A stretch of 64,000 nucleotides of DNA from Octopus sinensis (GCF_006345805.1 NC_042999.1:13206001-13270000); one strand, 5' to 3'; positions 3,641 to 58,490 are shown, numbered from the stretch's first letter. Notes: generated from the letters alone by a model not told the origin. A program made the numbers and translations.

Positions 3641-4059
3641 CTTTACTCTTTTACTCTTTTACTTGTTTCAGTCATTTGACTGTGGCCATGCTGGAGCACC
3701 GCCTTTAGTCGAGAAAATCGACCCCGGGACTTATTCTTTGTAAGCCCAGTACTTATTCTATCGGTCTCTTTTGCCGAACCGCTAGATGACGGGCACGTAA
3801 ACACACCAGCATCGGTTGTCAAGCAATGCTAGAGGGACAAACACAGACACACGAACATATACATACACATACATATATATATATATACATATATACGACA
3901 GGATTCTTTCAGTTTCCGTCTACCAAATCCACTCACAAGGCTTTGGTCGGCCCGAGGCTATAGCAGAAGACACTTGCCCAAGATGCCACGCAGTGGGACT
4001 GAACCCAGAACCATGTGGCTGATTAGCAAGCTACTTACCACACAGCCACTCCTGCGCCT
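3641..4059 (-). mobile_element. SINE family A (tRNA-like head GGCGCAGGAGTGGCTGTGTGG, internal microsatellite, CCAGCATGGCC tail), full length
   Basis: Near-identical to copies at 20020 and 60205; A/B-box-like head; (AAAAGAGT)n tail. Confidence 0.9.
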
Positions 4060-4069
4060 ATTTCCTTAC

Positions 4070-4500
4070 ATTGACTTATTTTTGTGTTTTCTAAACCGAG
4101 ATAATATGCTGTCTTGCAAGTGCTACCAGTCAAAAACTCCGCATACCGGAAACCAGCAAGTGTATGGGGCCATCAGGAGAGAATGCGTACTGTTTCGGGG
4201 CCTATGTCTCGACGGCATCAATGCGCACAGGACCCCCTCACTGATATGAGGCCCCGCTTGCTAGATCAGCTGGTTATCAAATAAAGCTCAATATTCTTCT
4301 AGCCATCGCTCATCTCTTTTTAACCAAATCCTGTGGCTAGCCTTCTCTACTTTAGTTTGGATATCGGTCATGGTGGTATTGACTTTACGATGAGTTAGGC
4401 CTAACGATAACAACAGTCGTCTCACACTGTGTCCAACGAACCCTCTACATCCGACTTCGATTAAGAACTGAAATATTATACTAATTGTGCCCGTGGAAAT
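4070..4500 (-). mobile_element. 3' end of HERO-type RLE non-LTR retrotransposon (ORF C-terminus plus 3' UTR)
   Basis: ORF 4288-4530 contains IEVGCRGFVGHSVRRLLLSLG...EKASHRIWLKRDERW, matching the HERO C-terminal pattern PVEVGCRGF...WLWLKR. Confidence 0.75.
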
Positions 4501-4577
4501 TCCGCGGTCCATATCGTGATACAGCATCATTCATAAATATCTCCCCACCTGGGGAATAATACCCTCAATAATAATCA

Positions 4578-4752
4578 TGAAATTTTAGGGGAGAGGAGCA
4601 GTCGATTACCTCGACCTGTGTTCAACTGGTACTTAATTTATCGACTCTGAAAGGTTGAAAGACAAAGTCGACCTCAGCGGAATTTGAACTCAGACGAGTG
4701 AAATACCGTGAATCATTTCGCCCGGTGTGCTAAGGATTCTGCCAGCTCGCTA
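4578..4752 (-). mobile_element. SINE family B (AAGGCGGCGAGCTGGCAGAA head, Nin-domain-like core), partial
   Basis: Core GAGGTCGACTTTG.CTTTCA.CCTTTC.GAGTCGATAAATTAAGTACCAGT on minus strand. Confidence 0.8.
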
Positions 4753-4866
4753 CTGAATAATAATAATAATAACAATAATAATAATAATAATAATAATATT
4801 AATAATAATGATAATAATAATAATAATAAGACATTATCATAATAATGATAATAATAATAATAATAA

Positions 4867-6828
4867 GGATTGACTACAAAAAGGCGTTTGATAGCATCCC
4901 CCACACATGGATCCTCGAAACACTAGCCATTAACAAAGTAGCACCAACAATCATAAAATTCATAGAGCACTCTATGAATAAATGGCTAACAGTCCTACAC
5001 CTCCAAACAAAAGAGGGACTCATGAAAACCAAAGACATCCCCATTAGAAGAGGAATATTCCAGGGAGACACGCTCTCTCCACTCCTTTTCTGCTTGGCAC
5101 TGTCACCTCTATCTGATATGCTAAATAGAACTGGATGCGGATATAAATGTTACGGCAAAACGATCAGCCACCTTTTATATATGGATGACCTAAAACTATA
5201 CGCTGCAAATGACAAACAGCTGGAAACACTATTAAAGACAGTTCATGGATTTACCAAAGAAATAGATATGAAATTTGAATTAGAAAAATGCGCCAAAGTA
5301 ACCATGAAAAGAGGAAAACTAGTTAAGAGTAACAACATCACACTAGATAAACCAATGAAATAAAAGAATTAGACCAAAGCCAAACTTACAAATACTTAGG
5401 AATCCATGAACTAGATAAGACACAACACACACAAATGAAAGAGAAAATAAAAAAAGAATATTATAGACGAGTTAGATCAATACTAAAAACAGAGCTCAAT
5501 GCTAAAAACAAGATAATAGGTATCAACACTTTAGCTGTCCCAGTTATAAGTTACAGCTACAATATCCTTAACTGGACACGAAATGAACTGTCCAAAATAG
5601 ATAGGAAAACAAGAAAAATACTGACAGGATCTAGGATGCATCACCCAAAATCTGACATAGAAAGACTATATATACAACGTATAGAAGGTGGTAGAGGCCT
5701 TATACAGCTGGAAAACTACTATAAAATAACCACCATAGGACTGCAAAAATACCTACTTCAGAAGGAAGGAAAACTGATCCAGACAGCAGCAAAACACGAG
5801 CAAAACAAAAACCTGTTCTCAGTATTTAAGGAAGCTGACAAATACAAACAAGAAATCATACCACCTAATAAACACAAAGAAGAAGAAGAAGATGATGAAG
5901 AAACAACAAAAGCTATAAAACAAATGAAATCCAAACTAAAAATAGAACAGCAACGAGCCATGACAAAACGATGGCAAGAAAAACCCCTTCATGGTAAATA
6001 CTGCACTAAACTAAACGCAAAAGAAATAGACAAAGAAAAATCCCAGCAATGGTTGAGAAGCTCAGGACTCAAAGCAGAAACAGGGATTTTTAATTGCAGC
6101 ACAAGACCAAAGCCTCCCCACCAGAAATTACCAAAAACATGTAATGAAAAGAAATATTACAAGTAACTGCAGAATATGTGGAGATGGACAAGAAACTAAA
6201 TCATATTATCTCTAGCTGCCCAGTCCTGCTAAGAAGGAATATATTCACAGACATGACAGAGTTGGAACCTACATACATTGGAAGCTATGCCAACATTATG
6301 GAATAACAACAGAAAAAAGATGGTATAGGCACACACCAGAAAAGGTCACAGAAAACGAGAAAGCAACCATACTCTGGGATATGCCGATACACACAGATAG
6401 AGAAATTAAGGCCAACAGACCAGATATAGTTGTCAGAGATCATGAAGAAAAAAAATGCTTTCTAATTGATGTATCAATACCGGCAGATAACAACGTGTCT
6501 CTAAAAGAAATGGAGAAACTCTCAAAATACAAAGACCTGGAAATAGAGGTAACTAGAATGTGGAATCTGAAAACAGAAACAATTCCTATCATAGTAGGTG
6601 CATTAGGCATGATAAAAAAATATTCAGACAAATACATAACAAAAACACCAGGACTTACAAACACATATAACATACAGAAAATTGCACTACTAGGCACTGC
6701 ACACATCCTACGCAGAACACTTTCCATGCAATAACCATCAGAGCATCACAACAAATCACAGCACATACCCAAGGCACACAGAGCTGCGCTCGGTAGTGAA
6801 GTGAAAGCACGCTATAAAAATAAAACTA

Positions 6829-6831
<3 letters not shown>
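4867..6831 (+). mobile_element. 5'-truncated R4/Dong-clade RLE LINE (RT, CCHC finger, RLE), frameshifted, embedded in (TAA)n
   Basis: IDYKKAFDSIPH, RGIFQGDTLSPLLF, HLLYMDDLK, HPKSDIERLY..GGRGL, CRICG, RHD, NRPDIVV..D..K across ORFs 4845-5363, 5435-6166 and 6381-6734; (TAA)n at 4755-4866 and 6832-6893. Confidence 0.93.
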
Positions 6832-6894
<63 letters not shown>

Positions 6895-7454
6895 CTGTCG
6901 TTTCTACCGTAATCATTTGATTCATTTCTAGGAAATCTTGTCTATCTTGAATTCTCTTCTGGTCTATTCTCTAATTCTGGCTTATACAAAACATCTCGGC
7001 CTGTCATCATCGTTCATATTCTGCCTTCTTGATTAACAATTCTCATTCTTTCTCATTAAGGACACCTAGCTCCATTTTTAGTTTTGTTGCGGTGGTCACC
7101 AATGTGAAGTTGCGATGCTGGATGTGTATTGTATTGTTAAAGATCATCGTCGTGTGGTTTAGCTGGTTGCATGTATAATACATGAAGCAAACTCACGAAT
7201 CTTTGACTTTTAACACACTTATTGCTGGACATGATTTCCTGCATTGGTTATTTACAAAAAGAAAGATGCTGATAATATAACCACTGACTAAAACCTCTGT
7301 ATTTTTTTTTAAGGCTAGCTGTGATAGAGTGTTTGGGAGTGTCTGAAGTTGTTTCTTGCTTGAAGTAGTCAGTTCGAATGCTCGAAGTGATCTGGTGTTA
7401 GCGGTCTGCCTTCTGTAAATGCTTTGTGCGCCAAACGGATTTTATAGGGTGAAA

Positions 7455-15297: not shown

Positions 15298-15510
15298 TCT
15301 TTTATCCTTTATTTGTTTCAGTAATTAGACTGGTCATGCTGAGGCACCGCTTGGAAGCATTTTAGTCGAGCGAATCGACCCTAGTACTGAAGTTTTAAAG
15401 CCTGGTACTATCGGTCGGTTTTGCAGAACCGATCAGTTACAGGAATATAAACACACAAACACAGGTTGTCAAGTGGTGGTGGTTGGGGTGGGGGCAAAGA
15501 CACACACTCA
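15298..15510 (-). mobile_element. SINE family A, 3' half (5' half at 16880-17057)
   Basis: Tail and body on minus strand, ending in the internal CA microsatellite. Confidence 0.75.
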
Positions 15511-16876
15511 AACGCAACATGGTTTCCGACCAGGAAGAAGCTGCCTAACTCAGCTCCTACAACACTATGACTGGGTGCTGAAACGACTGCTCAACCACTC
15601 AAATGTGGAAGTGATACATCTCGACTTTGCAAAGGCCTTTGATAAAGTCGGTCATTGAATGATATGTCACAAACTGCGTGATCTTGGCATAGTTGGAAAA
15701 TTGGGAGAATGGCTTCATGACTTTCTAAAGGATAGAAGCCAGGTGGTGGTAGCCAATGGGGCCACCTCCAATAACACGCAAATAGTGAGTGGTGTTCCGC
15801 AAGGCACTGCTTTGCGACCACTGCTGTTCATAATGGCCCTCTCAGACATGCCCTCAGCCACGCAGAGAGCCACGACCACAAGTTATGCAGATGATACAAA
15901 AGTTTCACGAGTAATACAAAACCCTGAAGACACTATGCACCTGCAATGTGAGCTGGACGAAATATACAAGTGGGCTGAAAATAATAGCATGCAGTTCAAT
16001 GCTGAAAAAATTTCAAGCTTTATGCTATCAGCATACAAAACTAAATATAATACCCAATAAATACACTGGACCTGGAGGGATTGCAATCCCAGAGGCATAA
16101 TCAGTGCGTGACCTGGGTATTTACATGAGTGATGATGCAACCTTTCATGTGCATGTTGCTAAATTGGCAATGAAATGTAGGCGGCTGACTGGATGGATTC
16201 TTAGAGCTTTTAGAACAAGAGATCAGGAAACTATGATGGTCTTCTGGAGGACACTTGTCCTAAGCCACTTTGACTATTGCTCTCAGCAATAGTTTTAAAT
16301 TAATCACAGAACTTGAGGCAAACCAACGAAGCTACACGAAGAAGATAGCCTCTGTGCGGCATATAAGCTATTGGGAAAGACTCAAGAGATTAAGACTCTA
16401 TTCCTTAGAGCGTAGGCGAGAAAGATATGCCATAATATACATCTGGAAGATCCTGGAAGTACTTGTCCCAAATTTTGGCATCGAGTGTTACACAAATACT
16501 AGAACTAGACGCCACTACATAGTGCCAAGGACTCCAAATTTGCCATCAAGATGTAGGACAAGATACTGCGATAACCTGGGCTTCAGAGGTCCACAGCTCT
16601 TCAATATCCTACCGAAGGACCCGAGAGACCTGCATGGGGTGGATGTAGATGTCTTTAAAATAAAACTGGACCTCCTCCTGTCAGGTGTCCCAAATGAAGT
16701 AACTTCACAGCAGGAGGTGCAGATGAGAGCAGCTGCATCAAACTCTCTCATGCACCAATTGTCAATTGCTAAAAAGCATTCGTGAAGTAAAATCATGTAG
16801 CAACACCGAATGGCGGTGCCCCAGCATGGCCATATTTCGTGAGCGGAAACTAGATGAAAATGAAAAATGAAAATGA
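15511..16876 (+). mobile_element. 5'-truncated CR1/L2-group (jockey-like RT) LINE, decayed
   Basis: QHGFRPGRSCLTQLL, LDFAKAFDKV, SGVPQGT, YADDTK, LRLYSLERRRERY, RGPQLFNILP; (TGAAAA)n tail. Confidence 0.9.
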
Positions 16877-20551: not shown

Positions 20552-20626
20552 GATAGATAGAGATATACATATACATATATAAAGATATAAATATACATAC
20601 ATACCTACATACATGCATACATTCAT

Positions 20627-21490
20627 ATTAGAAAGCTCCGTGTGGATAGTAACATCGACCATCAAAGCAGTTTATCGTGAACCAATAGCCGGATTACTAC
20701 CTCCCACTTTGAAGGGTAAACGTTTGTAATCCAGGAACAGGAAATATCAACCAAGTACCTGCTGCACAAAAGATGCAGGAAAAGCCGTAAAGTGTGACAA
20801 TCGATGCAGACTTTGTGGAGTTCACACTGAAGATATCACATTATACGTAGTTGTCCGAAAATGTCATCACGGTATAATCTCCCGATGAGACATGATGCTG
20901 TAGCTAGGTAATTCTATAATGAAATCCGTCTGAAGGATAATCCCAAAGACAAAGAAATAAGAACCCACAATATGGTAGAAGCCGTAACCACTCATAATAA
21001 AGAAGAATCCTGGTGGAATGTAACAGTGAAGACCTCAATAAAATGTAAGCACAACAGACCTGATACAATGATTTGGGATAGAGAAGAGAAACTGTGCACA
21101 GTTGTGGAAATTGGCTGTCCAGTGGATGTTAACATAAAGATGGAGATCAGTGTAAAAGAGAACACCTATGCTGAACTATTGAGAAATCTGCAATTACTCT
21201 ATCCAGATTACAAGTTCAGGTATATTCATGTAATTAATGGGGTCCTAAGATATGTAACACACTGCCAAAAAACCAATCTTGAGAAATTAGGCTTCACAAA
21301 ACCAGAAAGAAGAAAGCTAATCTGAAGACTGCAGATCCGATCCATCACTGGAACTGTAAAAATCTGTAAAACTTTCCAGAAGTTTATCATTTAAATATAT
21401 ATGAGCATGTGTAGATATGTAACTATATGCGTGGGAACACATACATAAAACATAGAAATCTGCATATACATACATACATACATACATACA

Positions 21491-21521
<31 letters not shown>

Positions 21522-21799
21522 CCAGTTGTTAATATTGAAATTCCAATGAAGGATCCATGGATCTAGGTTAGAAACCGGTTCTTTCTCTATTGGCAAGAAA
21601 TATTGAAATAAACTGAATAATGATATACACATACATACATACATACATACATACATACATACATACATACATAATACATACATACATACATACATATCCA
21701 GTTGTTAATATTGAAATTCCAATGAAGGATCCATGGATCTAGGTTAGAAACCGGTTCTTTCTCTATTGGCAAGAAATATTGAAATAAACTGAATAATGA
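20627..21799 (+). mobile_element. 5'-truncated RLE LINE of the (CATA)n-associated family, with duplicated 3' terminal module
   Basis: TSHFEG..IQEQEISTKYL, CRLCG.H.EDIT, RHD, WWNV.VKTSIKCKHNRPD, EIGCP.D..KE; (CATA)-like sequence at the 5' junction and (CATA)n after each 3' module. Confidence 0.88.
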
Positions 21800-23029
21800 T
21801 ATACACATACATACATACATACATACATACTACATACATACATACATACATACATACATACATACATACGTACATACATTTATACAAGGGCCGAATTTAT
21901 TTAGTCAACAATTTAATATACTATCTAAAAAGGATTCTCACCTTAAAAAGTAACATTTTAGCAGCAAAAGAAAAGGAAAAGAAAATTCTAAAGTTCTGAA
22001 AAATAGCCCTATCTAGTAACCCTGAATGGTTTCATTCATTGCCCTATGGCCATGCTGGAGCACCGTTTCTTTTGTTATAGGGAGGTCAATGACATTGATC
22101 TCACTACTTTATATTATTGACTGGCATTATGTCCAACAGACGACTGTTTCTGCCATACATTTATCCATCCGCCATTGTACTTCTCTTTTCGTTTTATTAT
22201 TTTATTTCCGATAAATATTTCCAGTATTAGCAGCTATTTTTTTTTTATTTAACATTACATTTCATGGAGAATGTTCCCATAAAAAAACAACAGCTATTTT
22301 CTGTTTATCAGTTGACGTCATTTCCGCTTTTGGATAATATTTCTCGAGAATATTACAGCATCAATCATTATTTTAAGAGAAGTTCCATAAAACCGGCTGC
22401 TGTCGTTTCGTTATTAATTTTATGCTCCTATTTCTGACTGAAACGAAAATGGCCATCAATAAATATTGCCAGAGACTTTAAAGAAATACTGTTTTGTATC
22501 ACGTTTTTCTATATTATCTAAGAACGGCCTTTACGGAAATAACCCAATACTTGAGCCGCTGTGAGAATCTTTCTGGGACGTTCAGCTGACATTAAAAAAA
22601 AGGAGGAAACTATACTATTGAAGGTCTTCTCACTGACCCTAATGTTTACTGAGAAGTTATGATGTTCATCCTTCATAGAAAATGCAGTTGTATAGGAACT
22701 GCTTACACAACTGCTCAACGACCGGTACATCGATAAGGAGCTCTGAGAGGCAAGGAAGGGCCCGTGAATATTTGCTGGGCGCCTCCTTTAAAAGGCAAAA
22801 TAAAAAAAAGACACGCACTTCGAGAGGGTATCGCCTTCTTGAGTCCAGAAAGCAGCCTTGAGACTCGTCTTGCCAAATTTCCCTCGGAATCTCAGCTCAT
22901 TATAGTAACTGTAGCGTAGCTAGGGGTGGATAAAGGAGACAGTTCCCATCAGACGGCGCTTTTTATGAGGGCGGTGATTTTGGGTCTGTTGTATCAGCCT
23001 GTATAGGCTTGGGAGTTCCGTGGGGATAG

Positions 23030-32046: not shown

Positions 32047-33115
32047 CATCATCATCATCATTGTTCAACCGTGGTCGAGACAATGTAATTTACCATGCTA
32101 CACCAGACTTCACTGTCCATCATGGCATTACGGAGGTCCTGTTGCTGGATGCCTGTATACCTGGAGATTACATCAGAGTAGGAGAGTGTGCGCCCTCTGG
32201 TATTGCGAGTAGATGGCTTCCAGAGGAGAAGAGTAGAAATTACCTCTTTTTCAGCTCTACAACAATGTCCAGCAAACTGGACTCTCTTACCTTTCACAAG
32301 AGATGACACAGGTGGTAGTTTCCCATATATTTGCATTTTGGTTGGATGGCGTTTCCACGAGAGATTTTGAGCTCTTATAAGGAGGCGAGTGTAGGTTCCA
32401 TCCAACCGCCTCTCAAGCTTCTTTGATAACGTCCGGGTTTCTGAGCCATATAGTAGAATTGGTTCGACTGTGGCTTTGAAGATTTCAAGTTTGAAGTCTC
32501 TACTTAGATTTGATGACCAGATCTTATGCATGTCATTACAGGCTGACCAGGCCATACCCTTTCTAGTTAGAAAGTCTTTTCCAGATGATGATATGTATGA
32601 CCCAAGATATTTGTAATCAGAAACCATATTTAAGGGCGCATTGTTGAGAGTATGGATGATGCAATTACTGTTGGACAGGCACTTGTTTATGTATTCAGTC
32701 TTGGCCTCATTGAGGTAAAGACCTACACAATTTGTGGCTTGTTCAAGAGATTGTAAAAGAGACTGGGCATTGGAGAGAGAATCACTGATAAGAGCGATGT
32801 CGTCAGCAAAGTCAGTGTCTGTCAAGTACTCAGCTGGGTGTCTGGAACTTCTTCTTGGTTTTATTTCAAAGACCTTGCCAGAGATAGTATCAACTTACAT
32901 ACGTAGCACATAATCAACAACAATGATGAAAAGAAATGACGCGAGTGTGTCTCCCTGCAGTATTCCGGCTTTGATTGAGAAAGATGATGTTTCTCCGTCA
33001 GGGGTTAAGATGGTTGAAGACGTATCTGTGAGGAGGACCTTGATGGCAGAAATTATTTTGTCTGGTATCCCATAGACCTTAAGGATTTCAAACATCTTGT
33101 ACCTATCCGTTAGAA
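32047..33115 (-). mobile_element. 5'-truncated RTE-clade LINE, nearly open RT frame with one in-frame stop
   Basis: YGIPDKII, AGILQGDTLA.FLFIIVVDY, DFADDIAL, YKYLGS, ILLYGSET, FAGHC; ORFs 32895-33230 and 32058-32825 share a frame; (TGA)n tail. Confidence 0.92.
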
Positions 33116-34087: not shown

Positions 34088-34319
34088 ATATATATATGTA
34101 TATATATAAATGTGTATGTGTATATATATATATGTATATATATTTGTGTATATATATATATGTATATATATGAATGTATATATATATACATATATATGTA
34201 TGTATTATATATATGTATACATGAATCGATTAATTCATACGAGCATGCATGCATACATACATACATATTACATACATACATATTACATACATACATACAT
34301 ACGAACATACATACATGCA

Positions 34320-34353
<34 letters not shown>

Positions 34354-34391
34354 CATACATACATACATACATACATACATACATACATACA

Positions 34392-34420
<29 letters not shown>
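33840..34420 (+). repeat. Compound CA/TA/TATG/(CATA)n microsatellite
   Basis: Direct reading; pure (CATA)n at about 34250-34420. Confidence 0.95.
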
Positions 34421-34423
<3 letters not shown>

Positions 34424-35587
34424 CCAAAATGCCTTTGAATGTCGCATTATAGCCCTTCGGCAACATCTTTTAACCACTAAATATCGAAGTGCATCCCTTG
34501 ACCAAGTTTGCACACATGAGGCTGATAATTTTATAAGACTTGGAACGCAGCTACTTGAGCAACACTCTTTGTCTGATAACCTAGATTACATGCCCCAAGA
34601 AGTCGCACGACTCTACCGCAGAGTATCTTCAGATGAAAGAATGAGCCTGTATGAGCAGAAGACTATGCATGGATATGTTAGTAGAACGCTCTGTGATGAT
34701 ACAAAGCTCCGTGGAGTGTTTGCAATCCAAGAACAGGAAATATCAACCAAGTACCTGATGCACAAAAGATGCAGGAAAAGCTGTAAAGTGTGACAACCGA
34801 TGCAGACTTTGAGGAGTTCACGCTGAAGATATCACCCACATTATAAGCAGTTATCCGAAAATGTCATCACGGTATAATCTCTCGATGGGACATGATGTTG
34901 TAGCTAGGACATTCTATAATGAAATCCGTCGCAAGGATAATTCCCAGGACAAAGAAATAAGAATCTGCAATATGGTAGAAGCCACAGCCATTCATAATAA
35001 AAAGGAATACTGGTGGAATGTTCCAGTGAAGACCTCAATAAAATGTAAGCACAACAGACCTGATAAATTGATTTGGGATAGAGAAGAGAAACTGTGCCCA
35101 GCAGATGTTAGCATAAAGCTGAAGATTATTGAAAAAGAGAACACCTATGCTGAACTATTGAGAAATCTGAAGTTACTCTTTCCAGATTACAAGTTCAGGT
35201 TTATACCCGTAATTACTAGGGCCCTGAGATATGTAACACACTGCCCAAATACCAATCTTGAGAAGTTAAGATTCTCAAAACAAGAAAGGAGAAAGCTAAT
35301 TCGAAGACTATAGATCTGATCCATCACTGGAACTGTAAAAATCTGTAAAACTTTCCAGAAGTTTATCATTTAAATATATATGAGCATGTCTAGGTATGTA
35401 ACTATATGCATGAGAATACATACATAAAACATACAAATCTGCACATACATACATACATACATACATACATACATACAAAAAATATCCTGTTTTTGATGTT
35501 GAAATTGCAATGAGGGAGGCTTGGATCTAGGTTAGAAACCGGTTCTTTCTCTATTGGCAAGCAATCTTGAAATAAATTGAATAATGA
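34421..35587 (+). mobile_element. 5'-truncated RLE LINE of the (CATA)n-associated family (longest copy)
   Basis: KTMHGY, FAIQEQEISTKYL, CRL..EDITHII..PKMSSRY..HDVVAR, WWNVPVKTSIKCKHNRPD; (CATA)n at the 5' junction, inside the 3' UTR and after the terminal AATAAATTGAATAATGA. Confidence 0.9.
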
Positions 35588-35633
35588 CATACATACATCC
35601 ATACATTCATACATGTATATGTGATGTATGTCC

Positions 35634-40771: not shown

Positions 40772-41425
40772 ATACAAAGTTATTTAGGACGAATATAACA
40801 TCTAAAGTTATCTCTAAGAGCAGAAAGATCGCCCAAAAGTGTATATAGATATTTAAATGTATTTATATATTCATCTATGCACACATGTATGTATAACGTG
40901 TGTGTATATATTTCCATAGAGGTAACCATTCACTCCGCACAAAGTTTTTTAGGACGAAAATAACATCTAAAGTTATCTCTAAGTAGCAGTCGCCCAAAAG
41001 TGTATATAGACACACACATGTATGTATAATGTGTGTGTATATATTTCCATAGAGGTAACCATTCACTCCATACAAAGTTATTTAGGACGAATATAAGAAC
41101 TAAAGTTATCTCTAAGAAACAGAAAGATCGCCCAAAAGTGTATATAGATATTTAAATGTATTTATATATTCATCTATACACACATGTATGTATAATGTGT
41201 GTGTATATATTTCCATAGAGGTAACCATTCACTCCGCACAAAGTTTTTTAGGACGAAAATAACATCTAAAGTTATCTCTAAGAAGCAGAAAGATCGCCCA
41301 AAAGTGTATATAGATATTTAAATGTATTTATATATTCATCTATGCACACATGTATGTATAACGTGTGTGTATATATTTCCATAGAGGTAACCATTCACTC
41401 CATACAAAGTTTTTTAGGACGAAAA
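40772..41425 (+). repeat. Tandem array of a 165-bp unit (4 units plus a partial; second unit 133 bp)
   Basis: AAAGTT.TTTAGGACGAA recurs at 40776, 40941, 41074, 41240 and 41406. Confidence 0.93.
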
Positions 41426-42271
41426 TCTTTATACATAAAAGAAAGGTTGTGTGTCTGTCTACTCCGATTTAGATTCCTAACTACTCCCACATTTTGCGAT
41501 GCAGTTTAACCAAAACCGAGTATCTTATAGTCGTGATTCATATCGAGCCCTTCTGGGTATTAGCGCGCGTCTACGATGAGTCTACGATTTTACAAATAAT
41601 TTACCATCATTTTTCCCCATTTTAATGCATTTTTAAAAAATAAATGGAAGTAACTCTCAAACTTCACACCAATATGCGTGCTCATATGCGACGTAATATC
41701 ACATCAGCAGCATTTCCTCACACCCTCATTGCACTTGGCGAAGGTAAAATACCAGGGGATGAAAATGGTAATATTGCCATCGATTCCATTTGTACCATTG
41801 TTAAGACGCCTTCTGATCTCAGAGATGCAGTGTTCCAAGATCTACAAGCTAATTATCAGAATATGGATTGGATTGGCAAAAAGGCTATACTGGCCCCAAG
41901 GAATAAAACTGTTCACCATATTAATGATGAAATGCTAAAACTCATTCCTGGGGAAGTCTATGTATATCAGTCTATCGATACAACTCCTGACCCAGAGGAC
42001 GTCATCAGCTATCCAATAGAGGTACTCAATTCCTTTGAGCACCCCGGAATACCACCACACTTTCTCAAACTTAAAGTTGGTGCCCCTATAATGCTCATCA
42101 GAAATTTGGTTCCCCCAAAACAATGCAATGGCACACGTTTGATCGTTAAGTCCTTATCTCCCAGCGTAAACTTATATCAATATTTGCCTGAATAATCATC
42201 ATCATTCAGTGCAATCATTAACAGTACTTTCAAGTAATTCAGCCCCGAGCAACACCGGGCAATTCTGCTAG
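41426..42271 (+). mobile_element. Deleted Helitron retaining an open PIF1-type helicase fragment (ORF 41644-42195)
   Basis: A|TCTTTATACATAAAAG 5' end; GCCCCGAGCAACACCGGGC hairpin then CTAG|T; ILAPRN..V..IN, YP.E.LNS..PG.PPH.LKLKVGAPIMLIRNL..CNGTRL. Confidence 0.92.
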
Positions 42272-57539: not shown

Positions 57540-58490
57540 ACTTATTTCCTCGATTTAATCGAAAAATATTTTGGTAACCAATATGACTAGATGAAATAAA
57601 ATCGAGACAGTTAATGCGTGGGCGATAGCATCGCTTCGGTGTGGAGTGGGAATTATAAAATGGCAAAAGAGAGAAATGAAGAAAATGGATATCAAGACCA
57701 GAAAAAAAGATGCCGCGGAACCACTGTTGAAACACACGAAGAAGGCTGGTATCATCAAAACTGAACATTGTGTAACTAAAGAAAAGTTTAAACAAGAAAT
57801 GAACAAAAAAAAGAAGAGAAAAGCGTGGAAAGAAAAGAAAACGTAAGGCCAGTTTGCAAAAATATGTGAACGCCAAGAAATTAAAGTCAAGGTCAGCGAG
57901 GCGTATCAAAAAAGGATGAAGATGGTGTTGAAATCCAACCTGAATGCTAAACATTTTATTACAGCAATGAATACTGGGCAGTTGCGGTGATCAGATATAG
58001 TGCGTCCATCCTCAAATGGATTAAGGAGGAAATATCAACACTGGATAGAAAGACGAGAAAGTTGATGACGCTGCATAGGGCGCTACACTCTAAAGCAAAC
58101 GTAAACAGACTGTATATGAAAAGAAAGATGAGTAATTAGTACAGACCATTGTATAAGGAGTGAAAGGAGAACGCATGCCAGGTATTTGATATATATAGTG
58201 ATGAAGACCTGCTGCAGTATGTCGCGAAAGATATGGGTGTAAATGCAGATGAAATGATGGTCAAGGAAGAGTTAAGGATAATGAGGGGAAAGGAAGAGGT
58301 TAAGGATAATACATCATCGTGGGCATGGCTTGAGCGAGGTGATTTGAAGCATACCACAGAAAGCCTGATCATTGCTGCACAAGACCAGGCTCTCGCTACC
58401 AATTCAGTGAAGTATAACATCTATAAAAATTCTGACACCCAGAAATACAGAGTCTGTGGAAAAGAGTGTGGAAAATGTGACCCACTCTAA
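57540..58490 (+). mobile_element. Two scrambled, old R4/Dong-like LINE fragments
   Basis: IETVNAWAIASLR.GVGIIKW...MDIKTRK; VLKSNLNAK...IRYSASILKW..EISTLDRKTRKLMT..ALH.KANVNRLY; WL.RGDLKHTTESLIIAAQDQAL. Confidence 0.75.

Follow-up and report, generated by a model that had tools for sequence, protein, structure and literature searches.

The locus considered here, a stretch of 64,000 nucleotides (nt) of the Octopus sinensis genome (GCF_006345805.1 NC_042999.1:13206001-13270000, the whole of which is referred to as the window), raises the question of why three decayed remnants of a long interspersed nuclear element (LINE), designated c1, c2 and c3, each begin directly after a CATA microsatellite: is the repeat the site into which the element inserts, or something that the element carries with it or lies beside by chance? 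The dead octopus copies lie in CATACATA repeats, their relatives in other animals are placed alike, and the lineage very probably inserts specifically into that repeat. The reading that we prefer, with a probability of about 0.82, is that the copies belong to an R2-type retrotransposon lineage that lacks long terminal repeats (non-LTR) and has a restriction-like endonuclease (RLE), and that would integrate specifically into C(A/T)TA microsatellites by target-primed reverse transcription and in one fixed orientation. It is carried by what was directly observed, namely how the copies are built, that their flanks agree with their tails and their orientation is fixed, which domains the protein contains, and that a hairpin in the 3′ untranslated region (UTR) shows covariation.

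Copies in the window and their composite 3′ ends

All three copies were located where the initial annotation had placed three 5′-truncated copies of one open reading frame (ORF) of the RLE type; positions and truncation stood, the common family did not, c1 being 58% identical to c2 and c3 in nucleotides and about 32-35% in amino acids (aa). Judged by its best homology matches, which fall within the lineage of c2 and c3, c1 is a distant relative in that lineage. The upstream arrays and coding remnants are:

34244-34421, + strand: (CATA)45 array adjoining c3, its presumed target (TRF and sequence)
34422-35373, + strand: c3 ORF remnant with the linker that follows the reverse transcriptase (RT), CCHC and RLE; stop codon at 35371-35373 (three-frame translation)
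34789-34857, + strand: c3 CCHC zinc-knuckle remnant, C..C....H....C, with an in-frame stop and a C-to-Y change; it aligns with the CCHC of R2
35047-35145, + strand: c3 restriction-like endonuclease remnant, KHNRPD..., its E-bearing strand missing in comparison with c2
20566-20626, + strand: degenerate CATA array directly 5′ of the c2 start at 20627
20627-21394, + strand: c2 ORF remnant, CCHC near 20793-20865, RLE at 21047-21170, stop codon at 21392-21394
667-1770, + strand: (ATAC)276 array of 1.1 kb directly 5′ of the c1 start at 1771
1771-2200, + strand: c1, its last ~105 codons only, stop codon at 2101-2103, then UTR

In a simulation with random placement and orientation in this window, a start at most 3 bp from a sense CATA array's 3′ edge was obtained with P ~5.6e-4, which becomes ~3e-7 for two copies and ~2e-10 for all three. 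Simple repeats are exceptionally plentiful in the window, and CATA, which had been called the most abundant of them, is indeed the largest class at ~4 kb. A repeat search of the whole window was swamped by microsatellites and local BLAST was used in its place, by which c2 (20627-21879) and c3 (34422-35615) are 86% identical over 935 bp. The 5′ truncation point of c2 lies ~300 nt further in than that of c3 and their outer flanks are unrelated; c2 and c3 thus go back to separate insertions by a single family, as had been proposed, and a segmental duplication is ruled out.

Both copies are 5′-truncated and decayed. The ORF of c2 contains several stops and frameshifts, while c3 has a frameshift near 34790, a stop codon within its CCHC motif (the knuckle reads CRL, stop, GVHAEDITHIISSYP) and a deletion of ~21 nt that removed the E strand of the endonuclease. 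Three-frame translation of the window copies nevertheless recovers the motifs CRLCGVHTEDITHIISSCP and KHNRPD..E..K, the CCHC of c2 and c3 reading C..C..E..H....C; by Pfam, the composite of the two gives a weak zf-RVT match only. The c3 remnant is 87% identical in nucleotides to a locus of O. bimaculoides (L001; fetched loci are given L numbers and proteins P numbers) and 73% identical in amino acids to P0001, an O. bimaculoides gene model that is the element's best protein match; Argonauta hians supplied a relative of full length. A 22-bp tandem duplication (2.3 copies) was seen inside the c1 ORF remnant at 1911-1960.

After the stop codon, c2 and c3 share one order: a proximal UTR of ~70 nt, an internal (CATA)n array, a distal unit of 110 nt and a terminal (CATA)n array. 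The claim that both copies end directly in (CATA)n was thus borne out, with the addition that the 3′ end is composite, the following parts being recognised:

35374-35441, + strand: c3 proximal 3′UTR (alignments)
35442-35477, + strand: c3 internal (CATA)9, which splits the 3′UTR and is missing from the homologous UTR of Argonauta copy D
35478-35587, + strand: c3 distal 3′UTR unit, hairpin at 35519-35542 (nhmmer, RNAalifold, pair counts)
35588-35615, + strand: c3 terminal degenerate (CATA)~7 tail
21395-21879, + strand: c2 3′ end, proximal UTR followed by (CATA)14 at 21466-21520
21521-21628, + strand: c2 unit 1, hairpin at 21555-21578, followed by (CATA)17
21697-21804, + strand: c2 unit 2, followed by the terminal (CATA)19 at 21805-21879

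The 110-nt unit is homologous, by nhmmer, to the terminal 3′UTR of every relative fetched, and since the UTR of Argonauta copy D contains no internal array, the unit is the true distal 3′UTR; the internal array is a peculiarity of the c2/c3 family. The idea that the unit might be a separate element resembling a short interspersed nuclear element (SINE) was dropped on the same two grounds. In c2 the block of 110-nt unit and (CATA)n is present in tandem duplicate (21466-21879, period 176), and the 98% identity of the two blocks suggests local duplication and not a second insertion, in contrast with a diverged unit nested in the tail of one relative (L006, below). The 3′ end of c1 consists of a degenerate CATA-like stretch of ~35 nt (about 2163-2192) and then ATCCATTT, which matches the start of the c2/c3 unit, with other microsatellites beyond. 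A search by nhmmer found no solitary 3′ units elsewhere in the window.

Within the unit, a hairpin that lies upstream of the tail, at a distance of 42-55 nt, occurs in all families and has the form CC-UU-G-5 bp-loop NGGUN-5 bp-C-GG, with stems as different as GTTCTA/TAGAAC, GCTATA/TATAGC, GCTGTA/TACAGC, GCCACC/GGTGGC and GTTACT/AGTAAC. RNAalifold on 16 sequences gave nine hairpin pairs, eight of them with compensatory double changes; among the first 10 sequences 92% of cells were paired, none of 500 shuffles matched the observed covariation score, and the signal was lost when partner columns were slid against each other. The R2 protein recognises its own 3′UTR RNA, which is the model for the hairpin here, and in stringent-type L2 LINEs (eel UnaL2, zebrafish ZfL2) a 3′ stem-loop and a short-repeat tail are both needed for recognition by the RT. 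The conserved stem-loop of L2 stands shortly upstream of the short-repeat tail just as in the present lineage, although the L2 elements are LINEs of the apurinic/apyrimidinic endonuclease (APE) type, are not target-specific and have hairpins of unrelated sequence. By analogy with these two systems, the hairpin is the best candidate for the recognition site of the element's protein.

Relatives, their flanks and their protein

Relatives were retrieved by protein similarity alone, their flanks not being considered, and these flanks therefore constitute an unbiased sample. L002 comprises (CATA)~50, a 5′-truncated copy with an intact C-terminal ORF and then (CATA)3, whereas L010 and L013, whose ORFs measure 1179 and 1217 aa, are intact and of full length and bear (CATA)18-28 at either end of the contig; in L004, L005, L016 and L021 the contig ends inside the CATA tail. 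The most telling locus for the repeat association is L022 (Argonauta hians BAAFZT010000002.1, 71-7778), in which seven copies are chained on one strand within ~7.7 kb, each truncated at a different point and with a (CATA)n array between every neighbouring pair. These copies belong to several families, being 43%, 53%, 62%, 74% and 97-100% identical to P0212 in amino acids, and one of them, at about 3740-7377, is of almost full length and has a stop within its N-terminal motif.

A sister branch is associated with a different repeat, (CTTA)n, which stands on both sides of L003, L006 and L019 and at the 5′ side of L007 and L014; in L006 an extra 110-nt 3′ unit of another subfamily is nested in the tail. 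Directly upstream of the CTTA-type LINE copies of L003 (3540-3895) and L006 (3630-3965) there is a tRNA-derived SINE with a (CTTA)n tail, possibly a non-autonomous partner with which the LINE has its tail, but not visibly its hairpin, in common. In the window, the sequences upstream of the remaining CATA arrays yielded neither a tRNA-derived SINE nor anything common to them.

Taking the window together with 12 loci, ~14 copies are clearly concordant in flank and tail, 4 are partially so, 1 is discordant and 1 is without repeat. The repeat reads C(A/T)TA on the sense strand in all copies, i.e., in one orientation, for which chance gives P ~4e-6 over ~18 copies by a simple binomial estimate. The initial annotation had placed the 5′ junctions directly after sense-strand CATA, expected their polarity to be non-random and postulated an RLE lineage specific for a tetranucleotide microsatellite: the junctions are so placed in c1, c2 and c3 and likewise in L002, L010, L013 and the seven copies of L022, a single polarity was found throughout the sample, and the agreement of flank and tail in the ~14 concordant copies supports the lineage itself. 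Beyond these claims, the lineage was found outside this genome, its 3′UTR hairpin was found to be conserved, and close relatives were found to switch between CATA and CTTA.

The full-length element measures ~3.7-4.4 kb and has a short 5′UTR and a single ORF of about 1100-1200 aa, which encodes, in this order, an N-terminal region of ~450 aa, RVT_1, a CCHC knuckle and a PD..E..K nuclease. In the window copies the truncation point lies downstream of the RT, a domain known from the full-length relatives (RVT_1 in L007, L009, L010, L013 and P0012, E 1e-23 to 1e-27 by Pfam); zf-RVT matches stay below the Pfam cut-off in these relatives as in the window copies. In alignment A1 the CCHC columns are invariant, as are P188, D189, E204 and K220, which form R/KPD...E...K, and no Exo_endo_phos (APE) domain was found by Pfam in the full-length ORFs. 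The endonuclease is thus assigned, from its motifs, to the C-terminal PD-(D/E)xK restriction-like type and not to the APE type, in line with the original proposal.

Among proteins of solved structure, those of R2 match the full-length relatives best (9nl2, E 4e-27), in an alignment that extends from the RT to include the CCHC, and the order of RT, linker, CCHC and RLE is that of R2. R2 differs in occupying a unique site in 28S ribosomal DNA and in possessing an N-terminal zinc finger and Myb domain, whereas the present lineage is flanked by microsatellites and neither domain was detected in its N-terminus by Pfam, regular-expression scanning or PDB profile search. The lineage likewise differs from NeSL, which has an Ulp1-type protease and targets spliced-leader or small nuclear RNA genes: no Peptidase_C48 was found by Pfam in the full-length ORFs, and the protease-bearing P0324 is a remote match only (27% identity, E 7e-26). 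The N-terminal region does contain a conserved motif, RPNRDY..W.YEL..GYMKRLK..WD..HPE, which is common to a TAA-tailed sister group. By eye this motif had appeared Myb-like, an idea that was dropped since neither Pfam nor the PDB profiles gave a match (best E 0.57).

The 5′UTRs of L010 (116-260), L013 (73-216) and L007 (129-285), which belong to different families, have the motif GGATTAYCGCT in common, extended in L010 and L013 to AGGACGTGTGGATTAYCGCTCT; its role could be that of an internal promoter or of an RNA-processing element. No ribozyme, whether of the hepatitis delta virus type or other, was found in the 5′ regions of five full-length or near-full-length loci by an Rfam E-value scan, which returned only spurious microRNA matches on repeats.

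A few further observations are recorded here. In L020, a scaffold of the TARA metagenome, the ORF is followed by three diverged tandem 3′ units of ~200 nt (870-1414), each ending in a (TGTT)n-like run; these runs may represent a third tail type with similar stacking. In L021 (1021-1114) the CATA tail runs into the Nextera adapter CTGTCTCTTATACACATCT... and homopolymers, which is an assembly artefact in the public record. No relatives were found in the viral contigs scanned, and the source names of the homologues were uninformative for assigning clades. Within the window, weak RT matches at 15500-16009 (+), 32451-33098 (-) and 57975-58133 (+) were excluded as other LINE types (21-41% aa identity), and a tandem repeat at 40880-41426 (periods of 133 and 166 bp, 89-95% identity) is unrelated to the element.

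Choice of the repeat and competing explanations

Were the lineage indeed specific for C(A/T)TA repeats, its protein would bind its own RNA through the 3′UTR hairpin and its RLE would nick a (CATA)n array on the (TATG)n strand; the DNA 3′ end so freed would pair with the (CAUA)n tail of the RNA and prime the synthesis of cDNA. Synthesis would frequently abort, leaving 5′-truncated copies, and the 5′ end would be joined inside the array, so that the repeat would come to stand on both flanks. New tails would in turn serve as new targets, producing chains of copies such as those of L022, L006 and c2.

Several points weigh against such specificity. All window copies are dead; the sample consists of ~20 copies rather than a genome-wide census; and since short-read contigs tend to break at repeats, the cases of a tail at a contig end are inflated in number. 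The conserved N-terminal motif has no DNA-binding fold that is recognisable by sequence, the neighbour-joining tree discussed below is without support values, and the long arrays might be later growth from a short CATA seed that served as the insertion site. The sole discordant locus, L011, has (ATA)17 on its 5′ side and (CTTA)7 far on its 3′ side, and L001 (O. bimaculoides CM046628.1, 9900-10866) has no CATA at either end, though it is cut at both. In L011 (1-160, 4134-4161) a hairpin-bearing 3′ end with the (CTTA)7 sits 850 nt past the stop codon, and the locus could be two stacked elements. L001 is a copy of the window family within a cluster of C2H2 zinc-finger genes, and is annotated as the protein-coding gene LOC106878562.

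Which component would choose the repeat is best approached through the families that have changed it. P0004, flanked by CATA, and P0005, flanked by CTTA, are 85% identical in amino acids over the CCHC-RLE region, and P0189 and P0201, which represent these two clusters by longer sequences, agree at 87% over 677 aa; at this level of protein identity, a change of flank goes with a change of tail. A single base separates the two repeat units, and the phase of the junction between UTR and tail is constant in all families, a final A being followed by CATACATA or by CTTACTTA. In the neighbour-joining tree the CATA-tailed families are basal, the CTTA clade is derived within them, and the CATA-flanked P0004 is nested inside the CTTA clade. 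A joint switch of a single base at 85-87% protein identity and with a fixed junction phase makes it plausible, without proving it, that pairing between tail and target contributes to the choice of repeat. A stronger form of this idea, which we put forward only tentatively, is that the choice is set largely by pairing of the RNA tail with the nicked target, the protein contributing no more than a relaxed preference for C(A/T)TA. If this were true, a one-base change of the tail, from CATA to CTTA, would be enough to retarget a family, and the lineage would be a naturally RNA-programmable site-specific LINE, with the 3′ hairpin as its sole element of protein recognition.

Purely protein-encoded specificity is a serious alternative, possible rather than probable in our estimation: the targeting would be real and would be set wholly by the N-terminal domain, the CCHC or the RLE, the tail being a copy of the target acquired by read-through or slippage. 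The N-terminal motif is conserved and common to the TAA-tailed sister group, the nuclease of R2 is positioned by protein domains according to established knowledge and the matched R2 structures, and the CATA and CTTA families do differ at 13-15% of residues, which leaves room for such an explanation. Yet no residue could be tied to the switch of repeat, the switch is a single base in a tail of fixed phase, and it has occurred at least twice among close relatives if the position of P0004 within the CTTA clade of the unsupported tree is accepted.

An unlikely explanation is that a short site containing CATA suffices and that the long arrays grew later from tail and target-site duplication. Array lengths are very unequal, as in the (CATA)50 and (CATA)3 of L002, some junction arrays of L022 have only 4-5 units, and LINE tails are a known source of microsatellites (PMC3812793). 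The array upstream of a 5′-truncated copy cannot, however, have come from the tail of that copy, and several unoccupied CATA arrays of 60-1150 bp in the window indicate that long arrays exist independently of the elements. Growth from a short seed would in any case still amount to sequence-specific insertion.

Very unlikely, in turn, is the absence of any target specificity, in which case the element would merely encode a (CATA)n tail and the upstream arrays would be earlier tails or expansions by slippage. The tail does belong to the element, the phase of its junction with the UTR being conserved, the upstream array of L003 and L006 is a SINE tail, and the block of unit and tail in c2 is locally duplicated. 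Random insertion, on the other hand, predicts 5′ flanks that are mostly free of repeats, whereas ~14 of the 16 informative copies match the repeat base for base, and no 3′UTR unit stands upstream of the arrays of 1.1 kb (c1), 178 bp (c3) and 200 bp (L002); a preference for earlier tails would, moreover, itself be a form of repeat targeting. Passive accumulation or retention in repeat-rich DNA of low recombination, or segmental duplication, with no preference at insertion, is scarcely credible even in a window so rich in simple repeats and although the position of Waldo-A and Waldo-B near CA repeats has been explained in this way (PMC3812793), given that the junctions are precise to the base, that all ~18 copies are oriented alike to the repeat strand, that truncation points, families and outer flanks differ among copies, and that the same pattern recurs in unrelated assemblies. 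Insertion specific to C(A/T)TA repeats thus stays the reading that we prefer.

Known systems and significance

Dong belongs to the R4 clade, and its target in Bombyx, Anopheles and the snail Biomphalaria is (TAA)n. Like the present lineage, it is a LINE with a single ORF and an RLE whose tail microsatellite stands on both flanks; the repeat of the present lineage is a tetranucleotide, CATA or CTTA, and not TAA, L011 being the one exception. The sister group that stands closest, sharing ~30-35% of amino acids, has tails of (AAT)n (L017), and the window itself contains an (AAT)n-tailed element at 4867-6831, between (AAT)36 and (AAT)21 (4756-6894 with its arrays). That element is a Dong-like RLE LINE, 5′-truncated inside the RT and starting with IDYKKAFDSIPH at 4869, and its closest full-length relative is P0032/L017, which also ends in (AAT)n. 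Its anatomy is exactly that described for Dong, which has an RLE and is flanked by (TAA)n (PMC3812793). By its anatomy and its (TAA)n-tailed sister group, the C(A/T)TA lineage is probably of the Dong-like kind, with R4/Dong and HERO as its candidate clades.

LINEs with microsatellite specificity that are already known include, besides Dong, the APE-type Waldo with its ACAY target, Mino, Kibi, Koshi, Togen and some HERO families (PMC3812793, PMC4640811). The target of Waldo includes ACAT and is therefore essentially of the same repeat class (PMC3812793); Waldo, of the R1 clade, differs in having an N-terminal APE and two ORFs where the present lineage has a C-terminal CCHC and PD-(D/E)xK, from which it follows that the shared target is convergent. 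Togen, specific for (TG)n, and the microsatellite-specific HERO families are, as far as the citing text describes them, RLE LINEs outside the R4 clade that use other repeats, so that the strategy recurs; the comparison is one of descriptions only (Repbase, cited in PMC4640811). In octopus, 'Dong-R4' LINEs are abundant and possibly active, with some 'Hero' among them, and have been annotated in bulk, and LINEs of the R2 superfamily are enriched in cephalopods among molluscs (PMC13282606, PMC8967140, PMC10294476). No description of an RLE lineage specific for (ACAT)n/(CATA)n or (CTTA)n was found in the literature, the Repbase Reports and Dfam lying outside the scope of that search, so that novelty is unproven.

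The finding would add a new target to a type of site-specific element that was known before, and involves no new principle. Elements of this kind were established between 1993 and 2004 by Dong, with its (TAA)n target. Tools for gene insertion are under development from RLE LINEs that are site-specific, foremost from R2 (PMC13586686, PMC13580325), and a lineage directed at a tetranucleotide repeat that is plentiful and non-coding would provide another kind of safe-harbour target. With its compact candidate recognition hairpin at the 3′ end and its natural target switches, the lineage would also be a tractable system for separating the shares of RNA and protein in LINE targeting, and the joint switch of tail and target together with the covarying hairpin are the parts most worth pursuing. 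For cephalopods, the finding would tie part of their unusually heavy load of R2-superfamily LINEs to unusually abundant microsatellites of the CATA class, and would account for the chains of LINE, repeat and LINE that confuse repeat annotation and assembly.

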